A stretch of 64,000 nt of DNA from Macrostomum lignano. Lineage: Eukaryota. Below are positions 57,801-60,800 of the stretch, piece by piece. Below the pieces are notes generated by a model. That model was not told the DNA's origin. It made no database searches and worked only from the letters and a program-made list of their open reading frames with translations. The translations under genes and the position numbers were made by a program. Every line of letters starts with the position of its first letter. The first letter of the stretch is position 1. The stretch lies in the NCBI GenBank assembly GCA_002269645.1, contig NIVC01000130.1, positions 372,001-436,000 of the forward strand, given 5' to 3'.

Positions 57801-60800
57801 AGTCTGCACCAAGACCCCAAACCCTCACCTTGGTCTGCACCATGACCCCAAACCCTCACCTTGGTCTGCACCATGACCCGAAACCCTCACCTTGGTCTGC
57901 ACCATGAGCCCAAACCCTCACCTTGGTCTGCACCATGACCCCAAACCCTCACCTTGGTCTGCACCATGACCCGAAACCCTCACCTTGGTCTGCACCATGA
58001 CCCCAAACCCTCACCTTGGTCTGCACCATGACCCCAAACCCTCACCTTGGTCTGCACCATGAGCCCAAACCCTCACCTTGGTCTGCACCATGACCCCAAA
58101 CCCTCACCTTGGTCTGCACCATGACCCCAAACCCTCACCTTGGTCTGCACCATGACCCCAAATAAACCCTCACCTTGGTCTGCACAATGACCCCAAACCC
58201 TCACCTTGGTCTGCACCATGAGCCCAAACCCTCACCTTGGTCTGCACCATGACCCCAAACCCTCACCTTGGTCTGCACCATGACCCCAAATAAACCCTCA
58301 CCTTGGTCTGCACCATGACCCCAAACCCTCACCTTGGTCTGCACCATGAGCCCAAACCCTCACCTTGGTCTGCACCATGACCCCAAACCCTCACCTTGGT
58401 CTGCACCATGAGCCCAAACCCTCACCTTGGTCTGCACCATGACCCCAAACCCTCACCTTGGTCTGCACCGTGACCCCAAACCCTCACCTTGGTCTGCACC
58501 ATGAGCCCAAACCCTCACCTTGGTCTGCACCATGACCCCAAACCCTCACCTTGGTCTGCACCATGACCCCAAATAAACCCTCACCTTGGTCTGCACCATG
58601 ACCCCAAACCCTCACCTTGGTCTGCACCATGAGTTTGCGGCAGGCCCGCAGCTGCATGACCGTCTCAAACACGTTGATGGTTTTGGCGCCGCGCAGCTCC
58701 AGCGAGCGCACCAGGATGTCCAGCGCGATCAGGGTGCCGGTCCGGCCGACCCCGGCGCTGCAGTGCACGAGAATCGGCGGCTCGTCGTCGCTTCGCTTCA
58801 TCTTCGGTGCGTAGCTGCGCATCTGGGCGAGGAAGTCGGCGAGGTCGTCGACATTCGGCACGTTGTAGTCAGCCCAGCCCAGGTAGAAGAGCTGCACCAC
58901 CTGAAGCGGCTCCGTCTGGTTTCTATGGAGATTGGAGGGGTTGTTAATAAATATTCGCAAAAAGACTTCCAATAGTCGTGTGTAGTAGACTTTATATGTA
59001 GCGATTTTTTTTATTAGAGGCAGGGGGGTTGTGTGCACCCTGGCGCACTTTAAGCGACATAAGCACACAACCGGCGAGAGGCATTACTGCCCATTCCGCC
59101 GACTCCCCTGAGCAGGCATACAAGCGCGCGGATACGTACGCAGGCACACACTCACACGGAGTGTACAGCGGCCCTAACTTTATTTTATCGTTAGGCATGT
59201 ACACTTCACTGCGCCTTGGGGGGGGGTTGGCTCTCAAGGCCGTTAATTGCACGAGCAGAGCCAAGCCGAGATTCCAATTCAGCTCCAAATTAATGTGACT
59301 GCACTTGGAATCGAGCCTGGGTCGCTGGCACACCAGAGCAGCTGCGCTACCGCTGGGCTACGGCCCCCCTATGTGTAGCGATCCTAATTCATTAAGTGAC
59401 GCGGATGCGCTTTAGACGCAATTCAGCGATTCTGCAGCGACTCTGGCACGATCCTATTCTTCAATATCCCAAATAATCACAAACAGGAGTACCGACCTGT
59501 CAGTAGAGCAGGTGACAGACATCTTGCGCACAGTGTAAGATCCCATCTCGCTCTCGCTCTCAAGGAAAACTTTGATCTCATCGTAGGTCTCGCACTGGCC
59601 AACAATCTCTGGCCAATAGCGCTCCGACTTTCTCTTCATGCCCTCTTGGCACTGGGTGAGCGTGAGGATCAGCGTCACCTTGTGCTGGTAGATCATGCGC
59701 CAGTGATCGTCAATGGTGCCCTGGATTGGGCCCTGGCTGGCTATGAACTCGCGCTCGCGATCCAGGCCCCTGTAATTCAATTGGCACTCCTTAACTAACC
59801 GTTTTAAAACCATGACTCACTTTCCCATCATGACTCACTTTCCCATCATGACTCACTTTCCCATCATGACTCACTTTCCCATCATGACTCACTTTCCCAT
59901 CATGACTTACTTTCCCATCATGACTCACTTTCCCATCATGACTCACTTTCCCATCATGACTCACTTTCTCATCATGACTCACTTTCCCATCATGACTTAC
60001 TTTCCCATCATGACTCACTTTCCCATCATGACTCGCTTTCCCATCATGACTCACTTTCCCATCATGACTCACTTCTCCATCATGACTCACCTCTCCATCA
60101 TGACTCACTTCTCCATCATGACTCACTTGTCCATCATGACTCACTTTACCATCATGACTCTCCTCTCCATCATGACTCACTTCTCCATCATGACTCACTT
60201 CTCCATCATGACTCACTTTACCATCATGACTCTCCTCTCCAATTCCTCATCATGCCCCGCCTTCTCATTGTGACACACCTGCATCATTATGACCCACTCG
60301 CACAACCCTGACCCACTCGCACAACCCTGACCCACTTGCACAACCCTGACCCACTCGCACAACCCTGACCCACTTGCACAACCCTGACCCACTCGCACAA
60401 CCCTGACCCACTCGCACAGCCCTGACCCACTCGCACAACCCTGACCCACTCGCACAACCCTGACCCACTCGCACAACCCTGACCCACTCGCACAACCCTG
60501 ACCCACTCGCACAACCCTGACCCACTCGCACAGCCCTGACCCACTCGCACAACCCTGACCCACTCGCACAACCCTGACCCACTGGCGCAACCCTGACCCA
60601 CGCCGCAAAAGCATTCGACCGACTTTAGCAGAAATCAGAGCAGTAAAAGATTATTAGAGCAAATTAAATCTGTCTTACTTGATGTAGTTGGCATTAATGT
60701 AGTCGTCCGGAGCGTGGCCAGGTCCTTCGTAGCTTGACTCGAGAACAACCCGAGTATGGTCGTAGGGCAGGATGTCCGTGTACCGGTTCTTTGCCCTGTT

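Follow-up and report, generated by a model that had tools for sequence, protein, structure and literature searches.

How does a gene cope when the end of one of its exons, together with the adjoining 5' splice site, is repeated 26 times in tandem, and how could such an array have arisen? This question is raised by a 64,000-nucleotide (nt) stretch of the Macrostomum lignano genome (contig NIVC01000130.1 of assembly GCA_002269645.1, positions 372,001 to 436,000 of the forward strand; hereafter the window), in which a first-pass annotation, made from the letters alone, had described an amplified splice junction in a protein tyrosine phosphatase (PTP) gene, here called gene B. We found that the array is real, and its earlier description was confirmed. 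The array lies at the junction of exon 3 and intron 3 of gene B, and it is an exon-intron junction minisatellite of the F7 IVS7 (intervening sequence 7), CBS and IFI6 type, the use of its donors being judged by analogy with that class. As argued below, the array is probably a tolerated by-product: splicing would use the first donor, and the copies would stay silent or feed transcripts into nonsense-mediated decay (NMD).

The 31-nt minisatellite extends over positions 57802-58632 on the minus strand and was delimited by Tandem Repeats Finder, by unit parsing and by counting a 20-mer at the junction. Tandem Repeats Finder reported a period of 31, 26.4 copies, 94% matches and a score of 1477. When we parsed the minus strand, 26 identical AAG|GTGAGGG donors were found, the authentic donor counted in, in agreement with the approximately 26 copies of exon end plus 5' splice site claimed before. 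The authentic donor is the first in the array: exon 3 ends with CTC ATG GTG CAG ACC AAG|GTGAGGG, the last exonic base is 58616, and the donor GT occupies 58615-58614. The unit consists of 17 nt of the exon 3 end (TCATGGTGCAGACCAAG) and 14 nt of the intron 3 start (GTGAGGGTTTGGGG), which corrects the previous division into 16 exonic and 15 intronic nt; seven units reading GGGC in place of GGGG share 18 nt with the exon. Twenty-two units are 31 nt long, three are 35 nt long with an ATTT insert, and the last one is truncated near 57805. The 20-nt junction GCAGACCAAG|GTGAGGGTTT recurs within four mismatches in all 25 downstream copies, with the AAG|GTGAGGG core exact. Every unit also contains the acceptor-like GTGCAG that had been pointed out (26 in 814 nt), and carries GGG and GGGG within 14 nt of the donor, giving 52 G-runs per 814 nt. 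A shorter array is present at the same junction of a tandem paralogue, gene A, at 27368-27694 on the minus strand; it contains five intact units (31 or 35 nt) followed by about five degenerate ones, consistent with the five to nine units reported for it earlier. The contrast of 26 units with five plus five shows turnover between the two loci rather than allelic variation. We sought such reiteration at four other donors and six acceptors of genes A and B and found none at all. Rfam covariance models gave no match at E <= 0.1 in the region 55000-61000, and the fold of the array RNA was not unusually stable (z-score -1.4). In a canonical G-quadruplex, the third loop would have to be 21 nt long.

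As judged from its sequence, the host gene B is a classical R3-like receptor-type PTP (RPTP). Its PTP domain is encoded by four exons on the minus strand. Exon 1 (60679-60972) is 76% identical to the gene A copy, which ends at 29381, and exon 2 (59497-59769) is 75% identical to gene A exon 2 at 28078-28350. Exon 3 (58616-58922), assigned by translation and PF00102, contains the WPD-loop region, the active site and the beginning of the Q-loop (LMVQTK); its end is in phase 0. Intron 3 (57267-58615) measures 1,349 nt from the authentic donor to the acceptor ...ctcctacag|G at 57267, and with exon 4 (57182-57266) the Q-loop and the final helix of the PTP domain are complete, as supported by a small hidden Markov model (HMM), Pfam and an RPTP-alpha alignment. 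When the four exons were joined, they encoded an uninterrupted protein that covers positions 1-233 of 234 of the PF00102 model (237.9 bits, 1.5e-70), in which HCX5R, the WPD-loop aspartate and the Q-loop (MVQTKGQL) are all present. The join of exons 3 and 4 aligns to RPTP-alpha without a gap (MVQTKGQLAFIY versus MVQTDMQYVFIY), and the closest single-domain PDB matches are PTPRJ, PTPRB, PTPRH and PTPRO, which belong to the R3 type. Exon 4 was found in both genes by the HMM, built from the C-terminal ends of homologues; earlier searches for it, with a QY.F regular expression and with blastn and tblastx between the downstream regions of A and B, had come up empty, and the motif in both genes is QLAF instead of QYxF. 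The nearest relatives of exon 3 in a collection of 5.8 billion proteins are only 48% identical, and the exact junction 27-mer was not found among metagenome contigs.

The first-pass annotation had known of no named element of this kind, yet the class has been described (PMC1557585 and PMC2630376). According to PMC1557585, "several genes" have minisatellites in which the boundary of exon and intron falls inside the first monomer. The gene B array shows the sequence features of the F7, CBS and IFI6 class: it is a head-to-tail array with a unit of minisatellite size (about 10-100 bp), its first monomer spans the boundary, the host gene is otherwise intact, and the most upstream donor keeps the reading frame. 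In the 37-bp variable-number tandem repeat (VNTR) of F7 IVS7, the pseudo-sites are functional yet silent, as 50 constructs showed, and the most upstream donor alone is used; raising the pseudo-sites to a consensus value of 91 did not activate them, since a process oriented from 5' to 3' picks the most upstream site (PMC1557585). F7 IVS7 resembles gene B in that exact donor copies lie inside a pre-existing intron and downstream use would be frame-breaking (O'Hara and Grant 1988; PMC1557585). However, F7 has 5-9 copies with 4 exonic nt per unit and the weak donor UGG|gugggu, whereas gene B has 26 copies, 17 exonic nt per unit and the strong AAG|GUGAGG, and first-donor use is experimental in F7 while we infer it for gene B.

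The closest analogue is CBS. Its VNTR, c.1444_1467+7(16_21), has a 31-bp unit with 24 exonic and 7 intronic nt and single-base unit variants (PMC2630376; see also Yang 2000 and Lievers 2001, as cited in PMC1557585), so that it shares with gene B the unit length, the large exonic portion (24 versus 17 nt) and the single-base variation, at a copy number of 16-21 versus 26; unlike gene B, CBS has no paralogue bearing the same array. In CBS intron 13, with 15-20 repeats, two pseudo-sites are used, as cited in PMC1557585. In IFI6 (6-16), 25 pseudo-sites come after the authentic donor, exactly as many as in gene B, and the two most proximal ones are constitutively used as well (Turri et al. 1995, as cited in PMC1557585). 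Both systems thus come with reported pseudo-site usage, and in CBS allele length has been tied to enzyme activity, while the gene B array is known from sequence alone. LMNB2 (100 bp, 10-15 copies) and PDGFA (81 bp, 16-18 copies) use the authentic donor alone, again as cited in PMC1557585; there the junction is reiterated and much of the intron is filled, as in gene B, although the units are much longer.

The reading frame allows the consequences of each donor of gene B to be followed. When donor 1 is joined to the acceptor at 57267, a complete PTP domain results. The frame is kept by donors 1 and 3 only, and the other 24 of the 26 donors give premature stops: donors 2, 4 and 5 shift the frame and lead to a stop in exon 4, and donors 6-26 meet a TGA within the array. 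Donor 3 adds 66 nt (31 + 35), corresponding to 22 in-frame residues with MVQTK regenerated before exon 4, and both paralogues keep it in frame, since their units 1 and 2 (31 + 35 nt) are conserved. Two other ways of using the array were rejected. Read-through coding meets a stop after four units, and a recursive splice site at GTGCAG would lie 6 nt upstream of a donor and 25 nt from the previous donor, with a lead-in that is G-rich and not pyrimidine-rich.

By the established duplex of U1 and the 5' splice site, base pairing with U1 snRNA is possible for AAG|GUGAGG from position -2 to position +5. We propose that the first, most upstream donor would serve the functional mRNA and that the 25 downstream exact copies of this strong donor would be pseudo-sites, mostly silent; if used, donor 3 would produce the 22-residue insertion and the remaining pseudo-sites premature stops. 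The coding sequence is left intact, because the array begins where the exon ends and continues into an old, pre-existing intron. The dN/dS of about 0.12 in exons 1, 2 and 4 between genes A and B indicates that the array has been compatible with gene function in both paralogues. In addition, the pseudo-donors have decayed in the older units of gene A (GTTGAGG, ATGAGGG), two of five having lost the GT, which argues against selection to keep them. First-donor usage and neutrality of the array are the parts of this reading that we infer, and the view of donor usage rests on the reading frame and on mammalian precedent.

The first-pass annotation had seen in the array a splice-donor VNTR whose copy number may tune U1 loading, donor choice or NMD. 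The same array might thus be a functional splice-donor VNTR, in which copy number would tune phosphatase output through frame-breaking donors and NMD, or from which donor 3 would yield an isoform longer by 22 residues. The identical strong donors, nearly all of them leading to premature stops, and the in-frame donor 3 of both paralogues fit this view, as does the use of the first two pseudo-sites besides the authentic donor in IFI6 and CBS (PMC1557585). Further, the title of Lievers 2001, cited in PMC1557585, associates the CBS 31-bp VNTR with reduced enzyme activity, and in humans, associations between the length of tandem repeats and splicing are widespread (PMC10078293). However, the F7 pseudo-sites are silent even at the consensus value of 91, the paralogues differ five-fold in copy number, which shows no sign of being constrained, GT has been lost in the older gene A units, and the variants among the gene B units spare the donor to no significant degree (p ~0.18). 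Weighing these points, we regard a functional VNTR as unlikely.

An opposite outcome would be that the competing donors of the 814-nt array disrupt splicing, which would make gene B a young pseudogene or a low-output copy whose exon 3 does no more than give or receive sequence in conversion with gene A. Gene B does have five times more pseudo-donors than gene A, 24 of its 26 donors are frame-breaking, and dN/dS mirrors past and not present constraint. Nevertheless, all four exons of the PTP domain are open, the catalytic motifs are intact, the splice sites are canonical, and neither stops nor frameshifts are present, and we consider such inactivation very improbable.

Where, then, did the array come from? 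Tandem duplication across AG|GT had been put forward as a route to intron gain and splice-site sliding. The gene B array resembles that process in being a tandem duplication that includes AGGT, but it differs in that no new intron was formed here. An intron created by duplication of AGGT would need to be absent from relatives, whereas a homologue with 48% identity (L001) has a phase-0 intron at the same place (MVQSL|GTATGT) and lacks the repeat, and approximately 34 of 80 homologous loci on metagenome contigs have a GT-intron at exactly the same position after MVQxx. The intron position is thus common to distant homologues, indicating that the duplication did not create intron 3, and the proposed intron gain was rejected.

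The ends of the unit offer a clue to its birth. TCATG is found at both unit ends, the exon having CTCATGGTG and the intron GGGGTCATGA; the sequence just beyond the array reads GGGGTCATGAAGAGG, and in the presumed single-copy ancestor the second TCATG would be 31 nt from the first. The remainder of intron 3 is full of TCATG-containing motifs in both genes. These include a second minisatellite in intron 3 of gene B (57337-57684, minus strand), with 17.5 copies of a 20-nt unit, GGTGGAAAGTGTCATGAGAG, that carries the TCATG also bounding the 31-nt unit. Derivation of this 20-mer array from the junction unit was considered; TCATG and GGTG are common to both, and the alignment is unconvincing. The core GGAAAGTG(AG)TCATGA is common to the 20-mer array and an 18-mer array in intron 1 (59811-60232), both on the minus strand, which suggests that these two belong to a family of related intronic minisatellites of gene B. 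As to the junction array itself, a 31-bp segment straddling the boundary of exon 3 and intron 3 would have been duplicated in tandem, the likely cause being slippage or unequal exchange between the two TCATG microhomologies 31 nt apart. Unequal exchange would then have enlarged the duplicate, the region being one where minisatellites form very frequently. The simplest origin appears to be a tandem duplication mediated by microhomology, with unequal exchange as the next stage.

Next, we need to consider whether the position of the array is unusual. The window is exceptionally rich in minisatellites: tandem repeats account for 35% of its length, and arrays that reach 150 bp or more number 29, most of them with periods of 12-86 nt; it also holds (TCAG)568 at 2406-4685 and (ACAG)71 at 62027-62310. 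When we combined the array density of the window with 12-20 donor junctions per window, about 0.1-0.2 junction-spanning arrays were expected by chance in each such window. At this repeat density, the position of the gene B array is not statistically remarkable for this genome.

A second, independent junction array was found in a distant PTP gene at one of the 80 homologous loci, L080 (contig WLWI01021405.1), whose exon is 37% identical. Here a 38-nt unit is repeated 6.4 times (L080:908-1150) across the junction ATG GTC CAG GCC TCC|GTGAGTTAACATACACAATATA; the unit comprises 16 exonic and 22 intronic nt, the intronic part being unrelated to that of gene B, and an in-frame TAA follows each donor. 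Directly after it stands a 33-mer array whose unit holds the exon-end-like CATGTCCA, so that the two arrays span L080:908-1636. The exonic breakpoint is at CATGG of the Met codon, as in gene B. The density of arrays in the homologous loci was 31 per 305.6 kb, from which 0.08-0.16 junction cases were expected (probability of at least one, about 0.1). The recurrence suggests a predisposed site, although the case is also compatible with chance because L080 is locally rich in arrays.

The L080 array also bears on another explanation, in which the reiterated donors and the 52 G-runs would form a platform that recruits U1 small nuclear ribonucleoprotein (snRNP) and factors of the hnRNP H/F type, thereby enforcing the intron border, enhancing the first donor or suppressing premature intronic cleavage. 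Each gene B unit has GGG and GGGG close to its donor, and G-runs lie exclusively downstream for the first donor alone. G triplets can enhance an upstream 5' splice site and bind U1 (McCullough and Berget 1997, 2000, as cited in PMC1557585). On the other hand, a search of the F7 repeat found no autonomous intronic regulatory element (PMC1557585), good units are limited to five in gene A, and G-richness is lacking from the L080 array, so that arrays of this type do not have G-runs in common. We judge the platform quite improbable.

When we examined the 26 consensus units of the minisatellites in the window (for example those at 6151, 10233, 13329, 36784, 52070, 55051, 57802, 59811, 63097 and 63855), the 5-mer shared most often was GTGAG/CTCAC, in 10 of 26 units, followed by the overlapping GGTGA, GGGTG, AGTGA and GAGTG with seven units each. 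In mononucleotide shuffles, GTGAG/CTCAC was shared by 1.9 units on average, and 10 was reached in 0 of 2000 shuffles. The 5-mer occurs on either strand and is thus not simply derived from donors. Perhaps it acts as a local minisatellite core through which GGTGAGGG donors become prone to amplification.

We then compared genes A and B, tandem paralogues 31 kb apart. In exons 1, 2 and 4, the nucleotide identity is 75-77%, and dS ranges from about 1.0 to saturation with a pooled value of 1.6. Taken with the dN/dS of about 0.12, these values indicate that the duplication is old and that both copies have been under purifying selection. The picture for exon 3 is quite different. The gene A exon 3 (27678-27984, minus strand) is identical to that of gene B at 304 of 307 nt, with a dS of 0.014 against the pooled 1.6 elsewhere; it is followed by an intron 3 of 573 nt (27105-27677, acceptor ...cacccttag|G at 27105) and by exon 4 (27035-27104, 3' end approximate). 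The near-identical tract covers 58600-58941 in gene B and matches 27662-28003 in gene A at 98% identity; it contains 19 nt of intron 2, the whole of exon 3 and the first array units, the first two units being identical in A and B, and no alignment of A and B was obtained past either tract end. Six differences remain, at -8, -5, -3, +115, +122 and +126, and the 181 nt of exon 3 adjoining the array are identical. In addition, the GC content at third codon positions (GC3) of exon 3 is 0.90 in gene B and 0.91 in gene A versus 0.61-0.77 in the other exons (Fisher p = 3e-4 for B and 2e-6 for A), the signature expected of repeated GC-biased conversion. The distal units of gene A carry variants of their own (GTAAGGTTTT...CAC, and GGTT and G-run inserts), indicating that gene A held an array before the latest conversion. 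On this comparative evidence, interlocus gene conversion covers exon 3 together with the array, and it probably happened more than once. Both paralogues have WADYNVP in place of the classical WPDHGVP (58871-58891 and 27933-27953, minus strand), where the catalytic Asp is retained, Pro is replaced by Ala and His-Gly by Tyr-Asn; the variant is common to both genes because it lies inside the converted exon.

In the mechanism that we propose, the array would have been shared with gene A via interlocus conversion, and tracts anchored in the array would have repeatedly overwritten the adjacent catalytic exon. The first-pass annotation had suggested that the array may drive conversion of the exon beside it. 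The association of the array with a converted exon held up, while a role of the array in initiating or anchoring the exchange is drawn from the position of the tract and the gradient of identity. Human hypervariable minisatellites show minisatellite-associated, polarised gene conversion. The present locus is similar in that the tract abuts the array and identity is highest beside it and falls with distance, but here two paralogous loci, 31 kb from each other, take part in the exchange, and a coding exon is overwritten. Together with the L080 recurrence, this exon-limited, GC-biased tract tied to the array goes beyond the literature consulted, and the rest belongs to the known class. Going one step further, MVQxx|GTGAG of PTP genes could be a recurrent birth site of minisatellites, at which the shared array would anchor and initiate the GC-biased conversion that keeps the catalytic exon identical. 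This idea is possible, though doubtful.

The near-identity of exon 3 and the copy number of the array could also be products of mis-assembly, or of polishing with mis-mapped reads. Long homogeneous arrays and paralogous segments of 640 bp that are nearly identical trouble assemblers, and a single assembly was used. However, the five variant unit types of gene B form an aperiodic map that differs from the map in gene A, the paralogues still differ at three exonic and three intronic positions, the raised GC3 of exon 3 builds up over the long term and could not come from polishing, and L080, an independent locus from another data set, has the same architecture. An artefact is in our opinion extremely improbable.

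Several points weigh against the reading of the array as a tolerated by-product with a dominant first donor. First, in-vitro work favours the intron-proximal one of identical occupied donors. Second, an earlier study of duplicated splice sites gave a result opposite to the proximal-copy rule (per PMC1557585). Either of these contrary precedents would predict mis-splicing of gene B. Third, the host may not follow mammalian splicing rules, and the gene B donors are much stronger than the UGG|gugggu of F7. Fourth, all five variant types among the gene B units spare the 9-nt donor core; the pattern is not significant (p ~0.18) but compatible with some constraint. Finally, the second array at the homologous junction of L080 may hint that the site is not random, and the identity of the paralogues could be inflated by assembly polishing.

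The surroundings of the two genes contain further features. Upstream of the gene A PTP exons, open reading frames (ORFs) on the minus strand (29762-30037, 30236-30607, 35396-35821 and 37004-37387) encode transmembrane-like and fibronectin-III-like ectodomain segments, consistent, by their predicted products, with an R3-type receptor PTP; these ORFs place the 3' end of gene B and the 5' end of gene A between approximately 40 and 57 kb. By blastn and tblastx, the sole similarity between A and B outside the PTP exons is a pair of retroelement fragments (12186-12766 and 47724-48279, plus strand), which are 74% identical and encode a CPFC...HFVCxCP zinc-binding motif. A reverse-transcriptase-like ORF of 628 codons is located inside a gene A intron (32066-33949, minus strand). 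Two direct repeats of 253 bp (41854-42103 and 51824-52076), 97% identical and about 10 kb apart, bracket gag-, reverse-transcriptase- and integrase-like ORFs (48278-51836, minus strand), and a CT-rich array with a 16-nt unit lies on the outer side of each repeat (40654-41848 and 52070-52626). The arrangement suggests that a long terminal repeat retrotransposon entered an already existing minisatellite in the interval between genes B and A.

The locus reveals no new kind of element; it is a non-human addition to a small class, with unusually many and unusually strong pseudo-donors. Junction minisatellites have been used to examine the choice that the spliceosome makes between identical 5' splice sites, and gene B is suited to asking if the preference for the most upstream donor extends beyond mammals and to as many as 26 strong sites. 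The array and the exon-limited tract between old paralogues make a tidy case of minisatellite-associated gene conversion. If the junction is indeed a recurrent birth site whose array initiates conversion, the PTP genes would be an example of minisatellite-driven, exon-specific concerted evolution in paralogues with dS above 1 elsewhere.

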